DNA of 31,639 bases from Amoeboradix gromovi X-113 (taxonomy: Eukaryota; Fungi; Sanchytriomycota), in contig JADGIF010000033.1 of assembly GCA_018985225.1 (NCBI GenBank), positions 1-31,639 on the forward strand. The letters are read 5' to 3'. Numbering within the stretch: position 1 is the stretch's first letter; each line of letters begins with the position of its first letter. Under the pieces are notes generated by a model, which was not told the DNA's origin, did not search any database, and saw only the letters and a program-made list of their open reading frames with translations. Shown piece by piece: positions 4,465-29,500 of this stretch. A program made the translations under genes and the position numbers.

Positions 4465-5994
4465 ATGAGTAGATTTCATTGGTCCAATCCAGCATATTAT
4501 GATTTCACCCCAAAGAGTAACAAAGATTCCATTATGATACATTCCTCGAAAACTTGGCAAACTTATGAACTGGCTGATCCAATTTGGGAGAGCACAAAAA
4601 GCACCAAAACGATTGAATTTGAAAGCGATCCTAATCCCCGCAAGACCGGGTTATTATTAGTTGGTTTGTGTGGTAACAACGCATCTACGCTTATTGCTAG
4701 TATTTATTCCAACAAACACGATATTAGCTGGAAGACAAGGAATGGTGTGCAGCGTCCAAATTATTACGGCAGCGTCTTTTTGTCATCCACTACTCCCATT
4801 CCAACAGCTTCCGGTCATTCACATGTTGGGCTAAACAAGTTAATCCCGATGGTGCATCCAAACGATTTAGCTATTCATGGATGGGATGTTATCAATAAAG
4901 ACTTGTATACAGCTATTCAAGACAATCATGTTATGGAACCAGATTTAATAATGCAGTTGGAAGAACTGAAAGAACTAAAACCGATGCCAAGTGTGTTTTA
5001 TCCTGATTTCTATGCTCTTAATCAGCAAGAACGAGTTAACAACGTACTGCAATCCAGTTCTAAGCAAGCACATTTGCAACAGATTCGTAAAGATATCAAA
5101 GATTTTAAAGCTAAAAATAAATTAGACACGGTTGTAGTATTATGGACAGCGAGTACAGAGAGGTTTTCTGAAATTATTAAAGGTGTCAATGACACCAGCC
5201 ATAACCTGCTTGTTGCGATTGAGGAAAATCATCCGGAAATTGCCCCCAGTACCATTTTTGCTGTCGCTTCTATTTTGGAAGGCGCTATATTTATAAACGG
5301 ATCCCCTCAGAATACTTTAACTGACGCTGTGCTAGAATTAAGCAAATTGCATCAAACCCCAGTCGCTGGTTCAGATTTTAAAAGTGGTCAGACAAAGATG
5401 AAGAGCGTTTTGACAGAATTTCTTATTAATGCGGGAATAAAGCCTTTAGCTATAACTAGCTATAACCATCTAGGTAACAACGATGGATACAATTTAAGTC
5501 AGTATGAGCAGTTCAAAAGCAAGGAAATCTCAAAAAGCAATGTTGTAGACGATATGATTAGCAGTAATCCTCTACTTTACAAAGATAACGAGCACATTGA
5601 CCATGCGATAGTCATAAAGTACGTACCGGCTGTTGGTGATGTTAAGAGGGCCATGGATGAATACTACTCTGATATTTTCATGGGCGGTAAATCAATTATC
5701 ACCATTAATAACATCTGCGAAGACAGTTTATTGGCTGCACCGTTAATTATTGATTTAACAATTTATGCAGAACTTCTGGGAAGAATTAAATACAAAGATG
5801 AAGATGGCAAATACACACCAATCACAAGTTGCTTTGGAGGTTTACTTAGTTATATGCTGAAGGCGCCAACAGTAAGCAAGGGTGGGGTGATTAACTCATT
5901 AAATAAGCAAAGAAGAGGGATTGAAAACTTTATTAGAAGCCTGGTTAATATCAATGCTGTTGAGGATGTACCTATTGAATGGATCTTGCAATAA
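4465..5994 (+). CDS. INO1: Inositol-3-phosphate synthase
   Basis: GLCGNNAS, LWTASTER, NGSPQNT, DFKSGQTK, SYNHLGNNDG and CEDSLLAAP motifs; 509 aa. Confidence 0.97.
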   Translation: MSRFHWSNPAYYDFTPKSNKDSIMIHSSKTWQTYELADPIWESTKSTKTIEFESDPNPRKTGLLLVGLCGNNASTLIASIYSNKHDISWKTRNGVQRPNYYGSVFLSSTTPIPTASGHSHVGLNKLIPMVHPNDLAIHGWDVINKDLYTAIQDNHVMEPDLIMQLEELKELKPMPSVFYPDFYALNQQERVNNVLQSSSKQAHLQQIRKDIKDFKAKNKLDTVVVLWTASTERFSEIIKGVNDTSHNLLVAIEENHPEIAPSTIFAVASILEGAIFINGSPQNTLTDAVLELSKLHQTPVAGSDFKSGQTKMKSVLTEFLINAGIKPLAITSYNHLGNNDGYNLSQYEQFKSKEISKSNVVDDMISSNPLLYKDNEHIDHAIVIKYVPAVGDVKRAMDEYYSDIFMGGKSIITINNICEDSLLAAPLIIDLTIYAELLGRIKYKDEDGKYTPITSCFGGLLSYMLKAPTVSKGGVINSLNKQRRGIENFIRSLVNINAVEDVPIEWILQ

Positions 5995-6142: not shown

Positions 6143-6688
6143 ATTTCCGAGAAAATCGAGAATTTCCACAGAGAAACGAATGCTAGATGCTCCGTTACAG
6201 TGATTGTTCATGCTTTCAATACCCTGAGGCGGGATTGAATAAGGATGCGGATACTTGATGTATATGTTCCTTGCTGTCATATGGTCTCTCTCTATCTTCA
6301 AATGACAATTTGTACAGGTTCAGGTTTCTAAATTAGTTTTCATTAGAGTACCACACCTTGTACATGTCTGACTAGTAAATGATTCATTACATTCGATTAT
6401 AGTCCTTCCTCTTTGTTTGCACTTGAACTTCAAGCGTTCCTTGAATAAAATGTACAGATATCACTGCCCAGGCATTGAAAGACATCTAATTCTTCCATGT
6501 TTGGATCAGTTCCTCAACGTTGATCAATTTATACTCTACCTGCTAGTTATTTCTTTAGAATTGATTTACCATTTGCGAAAAGAATTTAGTATTTGAGCTA
6601 TTAGAAAAATCTGGAAAAGTCTTGAAATTATACAAAAATGCATACAGATTCGCGATAAATGATTTATTCAAGAAAACAATCTAGCTGT
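6143..6688 (-). mobile_element. IS607-like non-autonomous mini-element, copy A (TnpA-HTH remnant + Fanzor2/TnpB C-terminal remnant + structured tail)
   Basis: Colinear with 28977-29500. The minus strand reads STLRN*SKHGRIRCLSMPGQ*YLYILFKERLKFKCKQRGRTIIECNESFTSQTCTRCGTLMKTNLET*TCTNCHLKIERDHMTARNIYIK, with in-frame stops. Confidence 0.85.
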
Positions 6689-10104: not shown

Positions 10105-10984
10105 TTAAGTAATAGCAAGCCACAGTTTCATTAAAAGTATACATATATATAACGACAAGTATAGATGTTCAAACCCTTGTCAAAGAGGTACCAAAAACTG
10201 AAGTAACCATTCAAACCTTATCAGAGCATTGCTAAGTATACGATATATGATTAGAGAGAAAGAAAGTTGAGATATCTAGGAACTAAAAGAACTTGATAAA
10301 AACGATTTATTAAGGCGATAGCAGTCTAATTATAACAAAAAAGATAATTGCCATATTGAAACCTCTAGATCATACAATGCCTTATCATTATCACCCGTGC
10401 CAAAAAATTTTCATGTTATCATAAGGGAATGGAAGTGGGGGAATATGGGGGCCTAGCCCCATCTCATAAGCTTTTCTCCAAGGAGCTTATGTGAGTTCGA
10501 ATTTGTTGCTACCTGCGTGTTAAGACCTGCGGCCTAAAGCCATGCAGGGTCTCAGCTAAGAATATGTACAGAATGTTTAGTTAGGCATTGTTATCGCAAT
10601 TCAACGTCTTGCGCATGCATTTCGCTGTTAAACCGCGTCGCACTCCAAAGATCTCATGTACCCGCCTTCACTATACATTAGCACTGCTTTTTAATGACAG
10701 CAGGCACACAGCAGAATAGTGTAGTCGTCATTCACAGCTAGCACGCACATGAGGTCTAAAGCCGGTGGTGGTTCAGGTGCAGATTCATCTACTTCTCTGA
10801 AATACGCAGTTGAAGACCCCTGAAAATGCATGTATCAATATTAATGTCTTTGGAAGTGAAGCTGCATAGTGGAAAGATTGGCCCATATTAGGCGCTTCCT
10901 CACCTTCTTCCAAAAGCTTGAGACTGTAGAAATTCAAGAAACTGCTTGCCTCAGTAGAAACTCAGATAATGTTGCAAATCCGTC

Positions 10985-11105
10985 TTGATCCTTCATTATT
11001 ACCCGTAATAAAAACATTTCGCCCCCCCCCCAAGGAGCTAGTGTTTTTGAACCAAGAATATGGATGAGTTGACAACCCACTACTCAGCTTTCCCTCGGCT
11101 ATATT
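10985..11105 (-). ncRNA. Putative Fanzor1 omegaRNA (scaffold ~11105-11002 plus flank-derived guide)
   Basis: Lies between the stop codon and the 3' TIR. The minus-strand RNA can pair CCGAGG(GAA)AGCU (11098-11086) with AGCUCCUUGG (11039-11030), enclosing the hairpin GUGGGUU-GUC-AACUCAU (11080-11064). The G-U pairs favour the minus strand. Position matches known Fanzor omegaRNAs; boundaries are inferred. Confidence 0.55.
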
Positions 11106-12233
11106 TTTACCTATAGAGAGCCTCGGCACTGCGTAGTCTTGTTTGATACGTGCGTGTGAATACTACTGGTCTCTTACCATGCAGTGTCTCGTGTAGAAAG
11201 ATATGTAAGATGTTGAGAGCAGCGTTGATGTCGCGATTCCACAGAGTGCGCGGACAGTTCGTTGTTTTACAACGTCGGACACTATGGATTGCTTCACCCC
11301 CGCTCTCCCCATACATAGGTTCTACCTTGTGATGACACTCGCTACACAGTTGACTAGAGTAGTCCTCGTTCACGTCACCTACTTCTACACCACTTCTTCT
11401 TAATGCTGTTCGTACACCTTTCACTGGTCCTGGACAGTGTCCCTTGCTACTGCTCGAAAACATGCCTGCCCCAAATGCTACCACCACTTCTCGCTCATCG
11501 TCTTCATTCAAAGGCTGACAAATGCGTTGGCAAATGTCGTGCATCACCTTCTGCTTTCTTCCAAACTGTTTGAACTTGAGACACCTCACTCTGCTCCTAA
11601 AGTTACGAGCCAGTACTGCATCGATGATCTTGAACAGTGCAGTGATGTGCAACACCATTTGATCGATGCTGGCTGTCTTTGCACTTGGCAAAACTGTCAG
11701 TCTGTCTTGTAGATCATTGTCCTCCTCCAGCCAGGTGCGTCTCTTATTGGAAGCTCGTGCCGAACCAATCTTCTCTCGGTACTCAGCATTGGTGTAGTGA
11801 GTCTTGTACTGCTGCCCTTCGTCACTGTGGCTGACACATGTTGCCAAGTCGATACGGCCAGGATCCACTACTACCACTCTCTTGTTGACCAGTGAGATGG
11901 TGTTTGCGTCTCCAGACACTGTCCTGACCTTCACCTTGCTGACAACTATGCTTGCTGCGTAGCCACCCGTTCTCAGGGAGTACTCGAAGTCAACACGCTT
12001 GTTCTTGCCGTCTGCTTTGCTGAGTCGAAAGCATTCCTCCCAGTAGTGCTGCTTCTGCTGCACAGACATTGTTGCATTGGGAACAGCTTTTTTGCCAAGT
12101 ACCCGTTTCAAGACACCTTGTAGAGTGGTAGTGCTGATCATGATGTAGCGTGCTTGCAGACTGCAGAGAGGGAGCTCCGAACACTGAGTTGAAATTCCTA
12201 GTTAGGGGGGGGGTGCAATCTTTATGTTACAGG
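11002..12233 (-). mobile_element. Tc1/mariner-style TIR element (TA TSD) carrying Fanzor1; no transposase
   Basis: Imperfect ~29-bp TIRs (CCCGTAATAAAAACATTTCGCCCCCCCCC at 11002 vs CCTGTAACATAAAGATTGCACCCCCCCCC on the minus strand from 12233; 6 mismatches), TA on both sides (11000-11001, 12234-12235), interior visibly more GC-rich than host genes. Confidence 0.85.
11107..12141 (-). CDS. Fanzor1 (eukaryotic TnpB-like RNA-guided RuvC nuclease), N-terminally truncated
   Basis: RuvC-I VVVDPG (D93); VAFGAG..GHCPGP; rearranged RuvC-II E259 in VNEDYSSQLC next to the zinc finger (C266/C269/C291/C296); RuvC-III WNRDINAALNI (D304); C-terminal RP..F.R. The in-frame upstream LPLCSLQARYIMISTTTL resembles an internal Fanzor1 motif, so the ATG is probably not the native start. 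Confidence 0.92.
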   Translation of the reverse strand: MISTTTLQGVLKRVLGKKAVPNATMSVQQKQHYWEECFRLSKADGKNKRVDFEYSLRTGGYAASIVVSKVKVRTVSGDANTISLVNKRVVVVDPGRIDLATCVSHSDEGQQYKTHYTNAEYREKIGSARASNKRRTWLEEDNDLQDRLTVLPSAKTASIDQMVLHITALFKIIDAVLARNFRSRVRCLKFKQFGRKQKVMHDICQRICQPLNEDDEREVVVAFGAGMFSSSSKGHCPGPVKGVRTALRRSGVEVGDVNEDYSSQLCSECHHKVEPMYGESGGEAIHSVRRCKTTNCPRTLWNRDINAALNILHIFLHETLHGKRPVVFTRTYQTRLRSAEALYR

Positions 12234-12812
12234 TAATAATTAGAGATTCTAAAGAGGGGAAAGTTAGACATTATCAAGTCGATGAGATATCCGCAAAGAA
12301 AGTATTCCGGCTGCCAAGATTTTATAACCCTAGAAAATTCGAAAGAATCATGTGAGTAAATATCCAGAAGCAGCTAATAGACTACTGAACAACAAGTTCG
12401 CAGGTGAAACTCTTTATCAAAGTATTGGACTGCAAGAGTAGTCCAATAAGATATAGCATGTGGTACATAACTATTCATTACGCACATGGAGGCCCTGTTT
12501 TTGTCTCTATAAATCTATCTGTAGTTGTATGCCATGTCGTACTCCTCTAAATAGTAAAAACAATCTTTCACACTATTCATTTTACATTTCTTACGTTGCT
12601 TCTTGTTTTACTCAAAGATGACCTCCCCTCAAACGCTGTCAAAAACATGAGAAACGCTTATGTTTCAAGCATTAAATCTCACTGTTAAGAACAACAGTTA
12701 CTTCCGAATCGAAACAACTAACAGATAATGAAAGCACTGGCAGTCTCCACTATTTTCATCTTTGAGATTAGGGGTTAGCTTGCTATTTTTTGAGTATGGG
12801 TCAAACAAAAAT

Positions 12813-16122: not shown

Positions 16123-18924
16123 TTAATCTAAGGACTTGCGCTGTCTCTTAGCATTCTTCTTTTCCTCCTGTTTCCTCTTGTTTCCTAGCTTTATTCCTCT
16201 CTTTTGCTGCTTCTCTCTTATTGCCAATTGCTTCCTCTCATCTATCTGGCTCAGTTCTAAAGATCTCTTTGCTTGCACTTGCTTTTGCTTGAGATCTCTT
16301 TTACTCTCTTGATGTTTCTTTAACGTCCTTAGTTGTTGTAACAATCCTAATCTTTCTCTCTCGTGTTCCTCTAAAACCACCGCCCTCTTTTTTTGATAGC
16401 TATCTTTTCTTAGTTTGCTCTGCAGCTTAGGTCTAGATGCAAACGGTAACCTCATCTCTAGTTTCTTCGAAATTCTTAATGGATGGAACTTCTTTTCAAC
16501 TCGTTCAATTGGCTTATACAGTGAGTCTAGTTGGTTCGTTGGTTTAATATTTAATGCATCTCTAAGCTCTCTCATACTTCGCATACCTCTCCAAGCCATA
16601 TTAGCTGGTAACAACAAATTATCAACATTTGAACAAAACCTTTCTATAGGCACAGTTATCCATGTTCTTAAGAACACTACATCACTCATTACTATCTTAT
16701 CTTCAAATGTAGCTCTAAAGACCCCTGCTGGCTTACTGCATGGCTTTTTAATTTGTCCTCTAATACCTGACACTGTTCTGATCAGTGCGTTTTCAAATCT
16801 CGCTACCTCTAATGTACTGCTAAACATGTCTTTAATAAATGCAGTGTTCTTATGAATTTTACATGGAACTCCCGTGAGCTTCAATTTCTTCTTTAAATCG
16901 AAATTAGTTTGATTACTTAATGTTGTGCCATTCATGCATATTCTGAAATGCTTTTGCTGCTGATTATGTACTCTATTTATCGCGATAAATCCGGTATTAG
17001 GTGCTATCTGGGGCCCGTAGATTACCATGTTGCAATAATCAAATTCGGGTGTGTACTTGAGAAATCTGCTCCGAATAGAATCTGATTTCATATATACAGG
17101 AACAGATTGATATCTACGCCATCCCATAGACATGATTACGGGATCATTAGTTTTTAATATTTGCGGGTACCATTTATGCTTCTTGATTCTGCAATGAATA
17201 TACTGCTTTTCTATCTCGTAATCATGTAACCCACCAATTATACAAATTCTATTTGGGTCCCAATTCAACACAAACTCAGGAGAAATCGAAATTCTTATTC
17301 GAACATAAGTGCCAGGCAAATGCCCAACATGCTTAATTACATCTGATTTGCTGAGACTAGATATTTGAGCCATATCAGCATCGAACTTTGACTGCATGTC
17401 TTGTTTCTGAGCATCGTAGAAAGTATTTTTATCCGCTTGTAATTTGTCGTCATCCTTTGCTTCAAATTTATTAATAAGCACTGTTTTATCAATAGCTGAA
17501 GCCACTGAGACATCATCATCGGAACCAGAGACATCTTCATTTGCAGAATCCAGTTCAACTGCCTGTTGTACATCTTTGTGCATACCTGTAATAAACATAG
17601 TTTCCAGGTTATCATCACTGAGATCGTCAAGACTAAAAAGGTCCTCGTCATCGGTGAGCTCGTTCTGCTGAAGGAGCTCATCATCTGACTCGAGCAGTGC
17701 TGGTAATTTCACATCTTCGGTCTGCTCATGTTCAGATTCTACCTCTTCGTCGCTATTCTCGCCTTGCACTGATTCATATTTATTGCTCTCTTCGTCACTC
17801 TCATCTTGTTCAGAATCACACTCGTCCTTTTGCTCGACTTGCGATACATCATGTCCAGCAATAACTTGCAGGTTATCCCAATTTGAAACCAGAGCAGTTT
17901 GGTGTAGTTCTTCTAAAAGAGGGTTAGCTTTAGACTGAGGCATATTGATGTAAATAGAATCTTTATCATATTGAATGCCATTCAAATCAGATTGAGGAGC
18001 ATAGATAAGCTTATGAAGAAGCTGCAATCTCTTCTTTTCAGGCTGCAGCGGACAAGGATCAGGAAGAGTCGAGATATCGTCGACTTTGTAATCATTGGCA
18101 CCAATGATATGAATGTGATGGTGGTTAAAAGGAAGACCACGGGTGTAACCGTACAAAGCAACAGATCTGTTGGCGTTTGGGTTATTTTTAATATCTTGAA
18201 CAGAAGTTAGATCTTCCATACGATCAACAAGAATATATGAGTGAGATTGCCGGTATTCAATAGGGCGAACTTTCTGCGTATTGATAAAACGAGTCAAATT
18301 AAGTAAATCCCGTTTCATGTAGTTGTCGTATTTTATACCACTCATAAAAAATACTTTTAAACCACCATACAACTCCTTCCATAATCTATCTTTTATAACT
18401 TTCTTCACAGTACGTTGTTGCTTGTTCTCTTTATAATGATCTAAATGTGTAATTACAGAAATGATTTTAGGCATACCGTGAGACTGCAAACAATGAATAT
18501 ACTCCATGGTTGACATATCTAGACCATCTTTGGCATTTACCATAAGTATAACAATATCAGCAATTTTTGAGGTATCTATTAAAGACTCTATCGTGTTCTC
18601 GACTTGAATAAAGGTGATCCGTCGAGTTTTATTACAAACAACTGTAACCGGACCTTGAATGTTAGGAATATTCTGACTAGAATATCTTTTAATCAGACCT
18701 CTTAGCAAGGTAGATTTACCAGCACCTGGTGGACCTTGGATAGCTACAACATATGGAGGACGGCCATTAATCTTATCAATCTGTGGAACATGTAATTTCT
18801 TCTCTAACAAGTCCTGCTTTCTTTGGAAATTTATATTGACTTTATTGGTAAATGCTTTGACATTATTTGCATTTGATTTAGGTTTTGGATTATTACGATG
18901 AACTTTGTTTTCCTGCGCTTCCAT
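16123..18924 (-). CDS. BMS1: Ribosome biogenesis GTPase BMS1
   Basis: GPPGAGKSTL P-loop, KKHKWYPQILKT.DP, GWRRYQ, RTVSGIRGQIKK and FRATFEDKI motifs; 933 aa. Confidence 0.97.
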   Translation of the reverse strand: MEAQENKVHRNNPKPKSNANNVKAFTNKVNINFQRKQDLLEKKLHVPQIDKINGRPPYVVAIQGPPGAGKSTLLRGLIKRYSSQNIPNIQGPVTVVCNKTRRITFIQVENTIESLIDTSKIADIVILMVNAKDGLDMSTMEYIHCLQSHGMPKIISVITHLDHYKENKQQRTVKKVIKDRLWKELYGGLKVFFMSGIKYDNYMKRDLLNLTRFINTQKVRPIEYRQSHSYILVDRMEDLTSVQDIKNNPNANRSVALYGYTRGLPFNHHHIHIIGANDYKVDDISTLPDPCPLQPEKKRLQLLHKLIYAPQSDLNGIQYDKDSIYINMPQSKANPLLEELHQTALVSNWDNLQVIAGHDVSQVEQKDECDSEQDESDEESNKYESVQGENSDEEVESEHEQTEDVKLPALLESDDELLQQNELTDDEDLFSLDDLSDDNLETMFITGMHKDVQQAVELDSANEDVSGSDDDVSVASAIDKTVLINKFEAKDDDKLQADKNTFYDAQKQDMQSKFDADMAQISSLSKSDVIKHVGHLPGTYVRIRISISPEFVLNWDPNRICIIGGLHDYEIEKQYIHCRIKKHKWYPQILKTNDPVIMSMGWRRYQSVPVYMKSDSIRSRFLKYTPEFDYCNMVIYGPQIAPNTGFIAINRVHNQQQKHFRICMNGTTLSNQTNFDLKKKLKLTGVPCKIHKNTAFIKDMFSSTLEVARFENALIRTVSGIRGQIKKPCSKPAGVFRATFEDKIVMSDVVFLRTWITVPIERFCSNVDNLLLPANMAWRGMRSMRELRDALNIKPTNQLDSLYKPIERVEKKFHPLRISKKLEMRLPFASRPKLQSKLRKDSYQKKRAVVLEEHERERLGLLQQLRTLKKHQESKRDLKQKQVQAKRSLELSQIDERKQLAIREKQQKRGIKLGNKRKQEEKKNAKRQRKSLD

Positions 18925-19729: not shown

Positions 19730-21370
19730 TTATTTGGTAATCCATTTGTTATCGTGTCCCTTTTGCGCTCTGCCGCTTGGGTCTGCGGAACATCCCCAAT
19801 CTTCTCTTGGTACCCATAATTTGACGCTCTCACAGCAACTAGCTTGCGGGAAGTGCTGCACAAATATGCTTCTAAAGTAATAAGCTTCTTTTGTAGCAGG
19901 AGTATCCCTTGGGAACCTAACATGTCTTTGCTCGAAAATGGTATCACTGACTTTTTTCTCCGCATGTAATTTGAGTGAATCGATCCAATTATAACCTACT
20001 CCATCTGAAAACTGCTCCTTCTGTCTGTACAAGACATCTTGTGGTAAATAAGGATCTTTCGGGGTGTCAAACGCCTGACGAATTAAATTCTTCTCCATTT
20101 CTTTATTGCACAACTTGTACTCGGGATCAACTAGCATAGCAACGTCCATAAATTCTTTGTCCAAAAAAGGTACCCTAGCTTCTAACCCCCAAGCCATAGT
20201 ACTTTTATTGGCTCTTAGACAATCTGCAGAATGTAGATCATTAACTCTATTAATCAATTCTTGTTGAAATTCCACCTTATTCGGAGCATCATGAAAGTAT
20301 AAATAACCACCAAATATCTCATCACTCCCCTCCCCACTAAGTACCATTTTAATGCCATGGGCTTTTATTTTACGAGACATTAAGAACATTGGAGTGCTCG
20401 CACGTATAGTGGTTACATCATAGGTTTCTAAGTGGTAGATAACATCAGAAATAGCATCTATGCCATCTTGTTCAGTAAATGTAAATTCATGGTGAATAGT
20501 TGACAAGTAATCTGCGACCTTCTTGGCAGCTTTTAAATCTGGTGAATTCTCTAGTCCAACACTGAAGGAGTGTAAGTTCCATACACTAGCCGATTTAACA
20601 GCATCTGAGTATTCACCATCAAGTGAATTAACATCCCTTAAAAGCCGTTTAACAATCGAACAAATTAATGAAGAGTCTAAACCCCCGCTTAGCAGCACTC
20701 CAAATGGTACTTCGCACAGCAACCTCTTTTTAACAGCATTTGTCAGAGAGTCGCGCAGAACCTTTAGATCTTTCTTATGGTTAGCAGCACTCGCAACTTG
20801 CCAAGAAGGATTAAAATATCTAACAAACTCATCATTTTTATAATAATGGCCCGGGGGAAATGAAATAATCCTATCACAATAGTTGTGAATAGCCTTCATT
20901 TCGCTTGCAATTAAGAAGTTGTTGTCAGAATATGCCCATCCAAAATAAAGCGGAGTAATTCCGATTGGGTCACGAGCTGCAAACACAGAACTGTCCAACT
21001 TGTCATACAAAATAAAAGAGAACATACCGTCTAGTTCATGAACAAAGTCTATTCCTTTTAATAAATACAAATACAAAATAATATGACAGTCGCTGGTCAA
21101 TTTATCAGTGATCTTATATTTGATAGCCAGCTGCTTGTAGTTGTATATTTCACCGTTAACCGCTAGTACAATGCGATCGTTCACAATAGGTTGCGCTCCA
21201 CTGTCTACTCCATTAATCGCCAATCGTTCATGGCATATAATCCCATCTTTAACAATCACACAGCCAGTCCAGTCGGGTCCACGATGCCTTAATGACTTGC
21301 TACACTTCAGAGCGTTGCTTCTAAATCCGTTAGGATCTTGAAGTTGAAATATTCCAAAAATACCGCACAT
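19730..21370 (-). CDS. ASN1: Asparagine synthetase (glutamine-hydrolysing)
   Basis: Ntn start MCGIF at ATG 21370; RHRGPD, NGEIYN, LLSGGLDSS, SGEGSDE and RQKEQFSDGVG motifs. Confidence 0.97.
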   Translation of the reverse strand: MCGIFGIFQLQDPNGFRSNALKCSKSLRHRGPDWTGCVIVKDGIICHERLAINGVDSGAQPIVNDRIVLAVNGEIYNYKQLAIKYKITDKLTSDCHIILYLYLLKGIDFVHELDGMFSFILYDKLDSSVFAARDPIGITPLYFGWAYSDNNFLIASEMKAIHNYCDRIISFPPGHYYKNDEFVRYFNPSWQVASAANHKKDLKVLRDSLTNAVKKRLLCEVPFGVLLSGGLDSSLICSIVKRLLRDVNSLDGEYSDAVKSASVWNLHSFSVGLENSPDLKAAKKVADYLSTIHHEFTFTEQDGIDAISDVIYHLETYDVTTIRASTPMFLMSRKIKAHGIKMVLSGEGSDEIFGGYLYFHDAPNKVEFQQELINRVNDLHSADCLRANKSTMAWGLEARVPFLDKEFMDVAMLVDPEYKLCNKEMEKNLIRQAFDTPKDPYLPQDVLYRQKEQFSDGVGYNWIDSLKLHAEKKVSDTIFEQRHVRFPRDTPATKEAYYFRSIFVQHFPQASCCESVKLWVPREDWGCSADPSGRAQKGHDNKWITK

Positions 21371-21733
21371 TAATAATAAATGTATGTAGGAGAAGTCATC
21401 AGAAATGCATGACGTAACATTTTCATGAGTAAGATCAAATAACATTATTTTCTCAAATGAAGACAAGCACTCTAAGAACTAGGCTAATTAGCTTTTGCAA
21501 AAGCACTCTATATTTCATCGCCAGGTGATTAGAAGAAATTTTGCCATTATCGTGAGAACCAATCTCACAAAATGTCCCAAAGTAGTTTTTCGTCATTTTT
21601 ATTATAAATGTTAATAAATACACCAAGTATCAGGGCATAGGAATATTGAATTACAAGTTAAATATTTTGTTGTTTACAAGAAATTAATTTTACTTGAAAA
21701 ATGAAATAAATTTGCGTTTATTCTGAGAGAATC

Positions 21734-22129
21734 CCTATGGGACACCAAATATAAAAACTAGACCAAGTCGTTTTTAAAGGAGGTGCTCCATAAGGAGGAA
21801 TACTATCATTAATAAAAGTCCTTCTTTCATTAATGACATTCCACTTTTTCAAATATAACAAGATGACCCACTATTTCTTTCAAATAAGGTCTTTGAGTAT
21901 CTTATCTGTTCCTTTTTCTTTTTCTTCTTACCATCTTTAGTATAACTTGTTTTTTGTTTTCTCTTCTTCTTAATCATTGTTTCTAAGATTTTGATGGATG
22001 AAAAGCTTTTATACTAAAATAATAGGCTTGAACAGATTAATTTATTTTACTACTGCTTAATACACTTGAAATAATGAGTCAAACTGTATCAGAAATTTTG
22101 TCCAGTTTTTATATTTGATGTCCCATATG
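21734..22129. mobile_element. MITE / deleted Tc1-mariner-like element with ~30-bp TIRs
   Basis: TATGGGACACCAAATATAAAAACTAGAC (21736-21763) is the inverted copy of GTCCAGTTTTTATATTTGATGTCCCATA (22100-22127), 2 mismatches; the same end recurs at 27357 and 31507. Confidence 0.75.
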
Positions 22130-26656: not shown

Positions 26657-27356
26657 TGAATATGTTTCAGCAGCTGCTACCTTAATTATTAGTTCGCAGA
26701 CCGATGGCATCAGTAACATCGAGGAGGATTTAAGATACGATCTAACCCCCGAAGTTAAAAACAGAAATAAAACCAACTGCTGTTTTGGTAATTCGCCTAT
26801 TTTGGGCTCACAATACCTAGCCCTAGGAGCACCTAAAAATTAGACAAACTTTTTAAGACGAATAATGCGAAAATGTCGGAAAGGTATATTTTGCAAAAGA
26901 TCCATTTCTTCGATATTCCTGATTTTTGTTTTGTGAAATCAAAGTATATAATCATGAAATCGGGTATTACAAAAACTAGTTGAGCATTTCAAAATAAACT
27001 TAAAAAAGAAATGCTTGAGCAAAAATGTTCCAAATTTTTATAAATTGGATATTGGGTGTTGCCCTTATATTTTCCATCATTCACTTCACTGCTGAAGCAA
27101 TACTTGGAGGCACTACTCTGGAATGAAGATTACTAGTGTCTTTATAACGGATGCACATAAAAGCTTCTTGCTTTCCACACCACCATTTGCATTTCTTGTG
27201 GGTTGATAAATGCAGTGACTAATGTGAATAGTAATTTTATTGTGAAGGTAATGATCGGATAATATTTCTTCGGTGGAGATTAGGCTAAATTTTATGTATA
27301 CGATGGCCCTCTAATAACTAAACCACCTCTTTTCTTCTTAATGAGCCCTTGGCTGC

Positions 27357-28976: not shown

Positions 28977-29500
28977 ACAGCTCGATTGTTTTCTTGAATA
29001 AATCATTTATCAGGAATTTGTGTGGATTTTTATATAATTTCGTGACTTTTCCAGATTTCTCCAACAGCTTAAATACTCGATACTCTTCCTTTTCACAAGT
29101 GGTAAATCAATTCTAAAGAAATAACTAACAGGTACAGCATACATTCATCAACACTTAGGAACTGGTCCAAACATGGAAGAATTAGATGTCTTTTAATGCC
29201 TATAAGAGATATCTGTACAATTTATTCAAGGAACGCTTGAAGTTCAAGTTTAAACAAAGAGGAAAGACGATAATCGAATGTAATGTAGCATTTACTAGTC
29301 AGACATGTACAAGGTGTGATACCCTAAAGAAAACCAATTTGGAGAGTTGCACTTGTACCAATTGTCATTTGGAGATAGGTACAGACAATATGGCAGCAAG
29401 GAACCCAATATTCAATCCCGCCTCAGGGTAGTGCAAGCGTGAGCAATCGCTCTAATCGAGAGATTAGTTTATCTCTTAAACTCTCGATCTTCTCGGATAT
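28977..29500 (+). mobile_element. IS607-like non-autonomous mini-element, copy B
   Basis: 29112-29201 encodes SKEITNRYSIHSSTLRNWSKHGRIRCLLMP (IS607 TnpA HTH-like); 29186-29431 encodes the Fanzor2/TnpB C-terminus; terminal hairpin at 29455-29488; homologous to 6143-6688. Confidence 0.85.
29186..29431 (+). pseudogene. Fanzor2/TnpB C-terminal fragment (zinc ribbon + RuvC-III)
   Basis: FKERLKFK...IIECNVAFTSQTCTRC....CTNC.LEIGTDNMAARN; the catalytic E is V here and RD is TD, whereas copy A keeps NES and RD. Confidence 0.85.

Follow-up and report, generated by a model that had tools for sequence, protein, structure and literature searches.

The window, a stretch of 31,639 nucleotides from the sanchytrid fungus Amoeboradix gromovi X-113, carries on its minus strand what is very probably a copy of an SPu-1-like non-autonomous Fanzor1 DNA transposon shortened by about 1 kb, most probably through microhomology-mediated end joining. 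Fanzor1 enzymes are RNA-guided nucleases of eukaryotes related to CRISPR-Cas12. Of such an element the copy still has the nuclease lobe, the structured right end and the TIRs on either side, and is without REC and the first WED strand.

The element and its Fanzor1 gene

The internally deleted element (10999..12236, minus strand) measures 1238 bp, compared with 2269 bp for a complete relative, and has a GC content of ~49% in a neighbourhood of 36% GC. It is flanked by a RhoGEF gene and a UTP23-like gene. Its open reading frame (ORF) of 344 aa (11107..12141, minus strand) begins at an internal Met and covers the second WED half, RuvC and the zinc finger. The codons of the catalytic triad, all on the minus strand, are those of RuvC-I D93 in DPG (11863..11865), which is invariant in the alignment of relatives and aligns with SpuFz1 D383, RuvC-II E259 (11365..11367), just ahead of the first CxxC in the rearranged site of the Fanzor type, and RuvC-III D304 in NRD (11230..11232), assigned from the relatives' alignment. 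D93-P94-G95, E259, C266/C269/C291/C296, R303-D304 and R324-P325 are all present, as the sequence-only reading had listed them, and are invariant or nearly so among the relatives. The spacing E259-x6-C266xxC269 sets the RuvC-II Glu six residues ahead of the C4 zinc finger; DPG together with a displaced Glu has been described as the signature of Fanzor proteins (PMC10711439).

In Pfam, PF07282 matched the ORF product (E 6e-11). When a profile of the close relatives was compared with solved structures, only SpuFz1 (E 9e-17), PpFz1 and GtFz1 matched. The fold comparison used the modelled structure of P0020, a full-length relative (pLDDT 82), that of the truncated protein being too poor (pLDDT 53), and Foldseek gave TM values of 0.67-0.69 to SpuFz1 and 0.59-0.69 to Fanzor1 structures as opposed to 0.23-0.24 to Fanzor2 and TnpB. 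The gene is a Fanzor1, the family to which it had been assigned from sequence. The IS607EU/Fanzor2 type (serine recombinase TnpA, no TIR or TSD, 400-500 aa) was considered and rejected, as TIRs are present, the full-length relatives have 609-696 aa and the fold is that of Fz1.

The inverted repeat of ~30 bp proposed in the sequence-only reading is real: the arms 10988-11033 and 12202-12247 are 78% identical, and the best 34-nt window matches at 28 positions; five shuffled versions of the whole window gave no more than 26. The 29-bp arms named there match at 23 of 29 positions. A TA dinucleotide stands on both sides of the element, also as proposed, and only the limits 11002-12233 had to be moved. 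Since the termini read TA-T-TA, the boundary is uncertain by 3 nt and the TA duplication fits in two places; a comparison of 11 ends, all with TA, favours 10999-12236. The simplest reading of these sequences would be ATTA / TTAC...GTAA / TA, with TIRs of 32 bp. The left TIR (12205..12236, minus strand) starts with TTACC and closes in a C run, and the same end is found with ~91% identity in C778, a second copy in the genome. The right TIR (10999..11030, plus strand) matches it at 26 of 32 positions.

Upstream of the left TIR stands ATTA (12237..12240, minus strand), putatively the TA target duplication preceded by AT and a candidate TAM; it is found before the TIR at all three known left ends (window, C778 and L086). 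The TA on the right (10997..10998), a putative target duplication, is kept at the right ends compared. At the right ends from the Amoeboradix genome and from metagenomes, T(A/G)ATA is kept after the TIR and the sequence is variable beyond, and two insertions of one family, L073 and L074, part just after the right TA. From these ends we infer a TA target duplication. Only this 2-bp duplication is consistent at both ends; readings of 3, 4 or 5 bp, which give non-identical repeats, and an AT duplication were rejected, as the two sides or other copies disagree. A search for an empty insertion site in the assembly and the sequencing-run contigs found none.

TA is the hallmark of Mariner/IS630, and on this feature alone the element is likely to be of the Tc1/mariner type. 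Neither the element, L086 and the other related loci nor the rest of the genome yielded a transposase linked to this TIR; this bears out an element without a transposase of its own, L086 also carrying Fanzor only, and the cognate transposase expected by the sequence-only reading was not found. The same absence, together with the TA-T-TA termini that blur the length of the duplication, is what would favour a host element of another TIR superfamily with AT-rich targets, a less likely reading that still deserves some weight, against which stands the TA duplication as the only one consistent at both ends. Domain searches for pogo and mariner (PF03184, PF01359) gave no hits, but the controls gave none either.

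Four Tc1/IS630-type DDE (DDE_3) genes are present in the genome, directly beside a distant Fanzor family. TIRs were seen on C99 and, for the distant Fanzor family, on C875, and they are unrelated to those of the window element. On C99 (L062:3084-6008), and also on C692, C422 and C1267, the transposase is paired with the distant Fanzor in a PGv-1-like layout, with broken Fanzor frames; the C99 element has 31-bp TIRs ~2.9 kb apart. Beside it lies a TnpB/Fanzor2-like C-terminal fragment (L021:1969-2445, minus strand; PF07282, E 6e-19). On C875 (L013:328-1946), an ORF with a KilA-N domain (E 5e-16), a domain common in large DNA viruses, lies directly upstream of a fragment of the distant-family Fanzor.

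The window contains further repeats. An older, degraded 3' fragment of a Fanzor1 family B (10389..10880, minus strand) with its own scaffold and right TIR lies ~120 bp downstream of the element in the same orientation, head to tail, and has kin on C738, C501 and C164. Insertion of the element within this remnant was rejected, no family-B sequence being present past 12238. A TA-flanked MITE of ~390 bp (21736-22127) has 31-bp TIRs starting with TGGGAC, with related ends at 27352, 31503 and 19035. The same MITE is inserted in the family-B copy on C738, where it breaks up the right end. A repeat of ~540 bp occurs twice, in inverted orientation, at ~6143-6688 and 28977-29500, with 85-89% similarity. 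Genes for inositol-3-phosphate synthase (4465-5994), a BMS1-like GTPase (16123-18924) and asparagine synthetase (19730-21466) show a compact host-gene layout.

The internal deletion

The ORF had been read as a nuclease cassette. It is instead only the C-terminal 54% of the protein, with 294 N-terminal residues missing. Residues 1-343 correspond to residues 295-637 of P0188 (638 aa) with 81% identity, and residues 1-339 to residues 291-628 of P0020 with 77% identity; P0188, P0020 and P0191 have the complete bilobed architecture, with REC and WED in 600-700 aa, which the window copy lacks. M1 aligns approximately with R276 of SpuFz1, and the equivalents of SpuFz1 1-275 are absent, among them those of H21, T22, K25, R96, Q129, Q130, N133, R157, R260 and R268. 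In SpuFz1, the first WED strand and REC residues serve to recognise the TAM and to keep the guide-target duplex in place (PMC10432273). As the ORF starts at the position of R276, these parts are lost, and the protein of the window copy would be without TAM recognition or guide positioning.

The genome's pieces were compared one by one with natural full-length relatives. The junction (12169..12175, minus strand) is a 7-bp microhomology, GCTCCCT, at which the 5' leader, most of it deleted, is joined to the middle of the ORF with a loss of ~1 kb; an in-frame ATG follows 28 nt past it. Two sister copies in the genome, C778 and C665, have 91-96% DNA identity and differ from the window copy by 9% and 5%, respectively. 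C778 has the same left end, next to it a leader of ~130 nt and then a frame that corresponds to aa 21-227 of P0188; it is frameshifted and without the 3' half. In C665 the coding frame goes on upstream of the junction (aa 254-303), and this copy carries further deletions. The window copy, C778 and C665 all meet at GCTCCCT, which indicates a microhomology-mediated deletion of ~1 kb, most likely the product of end joining.

Microhomology joints are typical of amplification chimeras, and the junction could also have arisen by fusion of the C778 left end with the C665 body during amplification or assembly. Sanchytrid genomes were sequenced after whole-genome amplification (PMC8371127), from which the present assembly also appears to derive, and an unplaced contig gives a second flank to the element at 10966-11001. 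Nevertheless, we regard a chimera as very unlikely, as the window copy differs from both presumed parents by the percentages given above and has a left flank of its own. In addition, a sequencing-run contig whose depth (25) equals that of unique flank crosses the junction, its shorter side covering 50 nt, though it probably comes from the source sample of the assembly and is then not independent of it. The contig giving the second flank shares ~30-36 nt of the right flank (10966-11001) and continues into sequence absent from the assembly; it may represent a further copy with the same flank at the guide position, another haplotype or a chimera.

Returning to a genuine deletion, the truncated protein might have been retained as a functional mini-Fanzor or nuclease lobe, for example as a dominant-negative sponge for omegaRNA or as a nuclease without specificity. 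The frame is open, with its ATG close behind the junction, the triad and zinc finger are intact, and the product is annotated as a protein in EukProt. Such a retained function is nonetheless very unlikely. The locus is a single copy, TDG, otherwise conserved among the relatives, has become TGG at residue 59, and selection appears relaxed, with a dN/dS of 0.49 against C665 (19 and 11 changes, 30 in all) compared with 0.15 against the outgroup P0020. The orphan WED half (aa 34-79) was poorly modelled, with pLDDT below 50 on a shallow alignment, most of the 5' leader is gone, and the sister copies carry other, independent deletions. The frame, open over 344 codons with an intact triad, speaks against a dead copy; a recent deletion accounts for it without proving the copy dead.

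Searches of the assembly, of the kind that the sequence-only reading had proposed for finding full-length copies and ORF-less derivatives, turned up no intact copy of the element and no MITE family bearing its TIRs; the copy counts are lower bounds. Judged by these comparisons, the window locus is a decayed, internally deleted copy of an SPu-1-like Fanzor1 TIR element.

Relatives and the predicted omegaRNA

The closest relatives of the ORF product are the ENA metagenome proteins P0188 and P0020 (628-638 aa), and its nearest named kin is BBJ28_00024584 of the oomycete Nothophytophthora sp. Chile5 (53%). The window ORF, the metagenome proteins and the Nothophytophthora protein fall into one well-supported clade with the same scaffold core, and many members have full-length open frames. 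None is characterised in the literature searched, and the clade seems to be an uncharacterised Fanzor1 sub-family. Related TIRs occur at several clade loci (L049, L050, L073, L074 and L086), and L086 holds the complete element of 2269 bp with a Fanzor of 661 aa and nothing else. An intact element has ~2.2-2.3 kb, TIRs of ~32 bp, TA ends and one Fanzor1 ORF of 625-665 aa, with no transposase. At L053 and L072 (P0020 and P0168), the P0020 locus keeps the scaffold core and has no TIR pair, with a 110-bp direct duplication in the leader, so the same Fanzor clade may be riding in different elements. Viral contigs and prokaryotic genomes contained no relatives and no TIR matches. The identities of 53-81% to oomycete and metagenome copies hint at horizontal spread. 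The literature searched, including part of one supplement, contained no paper that connects Fanzor with sanchytrids, and with the present locus the known hosts of Fanzor1 come to include sanchytrid fungi.

The prediction that the transposon end encodes an omegaRNA is supported by a structured right end with covariation over 13 loci. The conserved core of the predicted scaffold (11057..11140, minus strand) overlaps the last codons of the ORF and consists of a bulged stem, a variable inner hairpin and a G/C hairpin, with the end CCAUAUU. Across the 13 loci, 86.5% of the cells are paired and two-sided changes occur in 9 of 15 pairs. The covariation of 0.447, compared with 0.162 in shuffled and at most 0.20 in slid controls, is to be read as support and not as a probability, as the sequences share ancestry and the alignment scored is the one that had yielded the structure. 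One pair is broken in the window copy, the minimum free energy is unremarkable (z -1.5), and Rfam gave no match to the scaffold. The core is followed by a predicted terminal stem (10997..11056, minus strand), in which a variable spacer would pair with the right TIR ahead of the TA. In a permutation test over 7 ends (p 0.004), a spacer paired better with the TIR of its own element than with those of other elements, an effect carried mainly by three ends, with individual significance only in the window copy, L073 and L086. In L086 (4747-4909) the main stem is enlarged by an insert of ~45 nt, and the spacer repeats the TIR almost perfectly in inverted orientation.

The predicted guide is the flanking DNA at 10982..10996 (minus strand), by analogy with SpuFz1; it has no second match in the assembly. 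Because the pairing of spacer and TIR resembles stem 2 of SpuFz1 and the GtFz1 RNA, and known Fz1 scaffolds include the TIR and the 3' TSD (PMC13565253), the guide is probably the flank 10996-10982 and not the internal spacer. The opposite arrangement, a fixed internal guide, would have the scaffold stop at CCAUAUU and use the spacer before the TIR. Conservation indeed ends sharply at CATATT in 16 loci, some of them without a recognisable TIR, and the distance from CATATT to the TIR varies from ~7 to 35 nt. We nonetheless consider an internal guide improbable, as the spacer folds on its own TIR, in L086 as a near-perfect hairpin, as an internal 19-mer had no genome match beyond chance level, and as the known scaffolds, of up to 150 nt with several stems, extend through TIR and TSD. 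If true, it would mean that the nuclease promotes its own spread into members of the host transposon family that carry no Fanzor, rather than protecting sites of excision; an uncharacterised Fanzor1 clade of that kind, common to a sanchytrid fungus, oomycetes and aquatic metagenomes, is equally improbable.

Proposed mechanism and comparison with known systems

With the guide in the flank, and by analogy with known systems, an intact element would be excised and reinserted at TA sites, cut-and-paste, by a TA-targeting DDE transposase acting in trans. The omegaRNA of the intact relatives would be ~145 nt long, run through the right TIR and TA, and continue into ~15 nt of flank as guide. Fanzor would then cut 5'-ATTA plus flank, that is, the empty donor site after excision, and repair from the intact chromatid would restore the element. 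This restorative homing is taken from work on SpuFz1 and TnpB, and to our knowledge it has not been demonstrated in vivo for Fanzor1. The window locus could at most serve as a passive, mobilisable omegaRNA donor, a half-ghost, and is more likely a fossil. On its own the copy changes little, its value being that of a pointer to a Fanzor1 clade with the full-length proteins P0188, P0020 and P0191, which offers a predicted TAM, ATTA, and a predicted modular omegaRNA made of a conserved core and an exchangeable TIR stem.

Fanzor1 genes in TA-flanked TIR elements are also known from the Mariner-borne PUl-1, PUl-2, PUl-4 and PGv-1 (PMC3627910). PUl-2 has the DPGR and GPVK motifs in common with the window family. 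PUl-1, PUl-2 and PGv-1 encode a Mariner transposase and the TIRs of PUl-4 match confirmed Mariners, whereas no linked or matching transposase was found for the window family. GtFz1 of Guillardia theta (PDB 9CER) and PpFz1 of Parasitella (PDB 9CF0) are alike in their Fanzor1 fold (TM ~0.6) at 13-18% identity. The omegaRNA of GtFz1, with 150 nt and four stems, is near the length predicted for the window family, whereas GtFz1 loci have no IRs and N at the third catalytic position, where the window copy has D.

The closest counterpart is SPu-1 of Spizellomyces punctatus with SpuFz1 (PMC3627910, PMC10432273; PDB 8GKH), the best match in both sequence and fold. Like the intact relatives of the window copy, SPu-1 is an element of ~2.1-2.3 kb with ~30-bp TIRs, TA ends, one Fanzor1 ORF of 630-640 aa and no transposase; alike are also a tetranucleotide with TA as its last two bases ahead of the left TIR, a structured right end that includes the TIR, and partial genomic copies. 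The spacer folded on its own TIR resembles stem 2 of SpuFz1. In contrast, the proteins share only 17-18% identity, the TIRs are different, and SPu-1 has CATA upstream, where two fixed bases and TA make the CATA TAM, while the window family has ATTA. The SpuFz1 scaffold has 75 nt, whereas ~145 nt and an extra stem are predicted for the window family, and SpuFz1 possesses the REC and first WED strand missing from the window copy. SPu-1 is represented by 19 full-length and 134 ghost loci, Amoeboradix by three decayed copies. The ghost Spu-1 loci are non-coding derivatives with both TIRs and an omegaRNA usable in trans (PMC10432273). The window copy resembles them in its TIRs and its predicted omegaRNA; it differs in that it retains half of its ORF and that the assembly yielded no intact partner protein.
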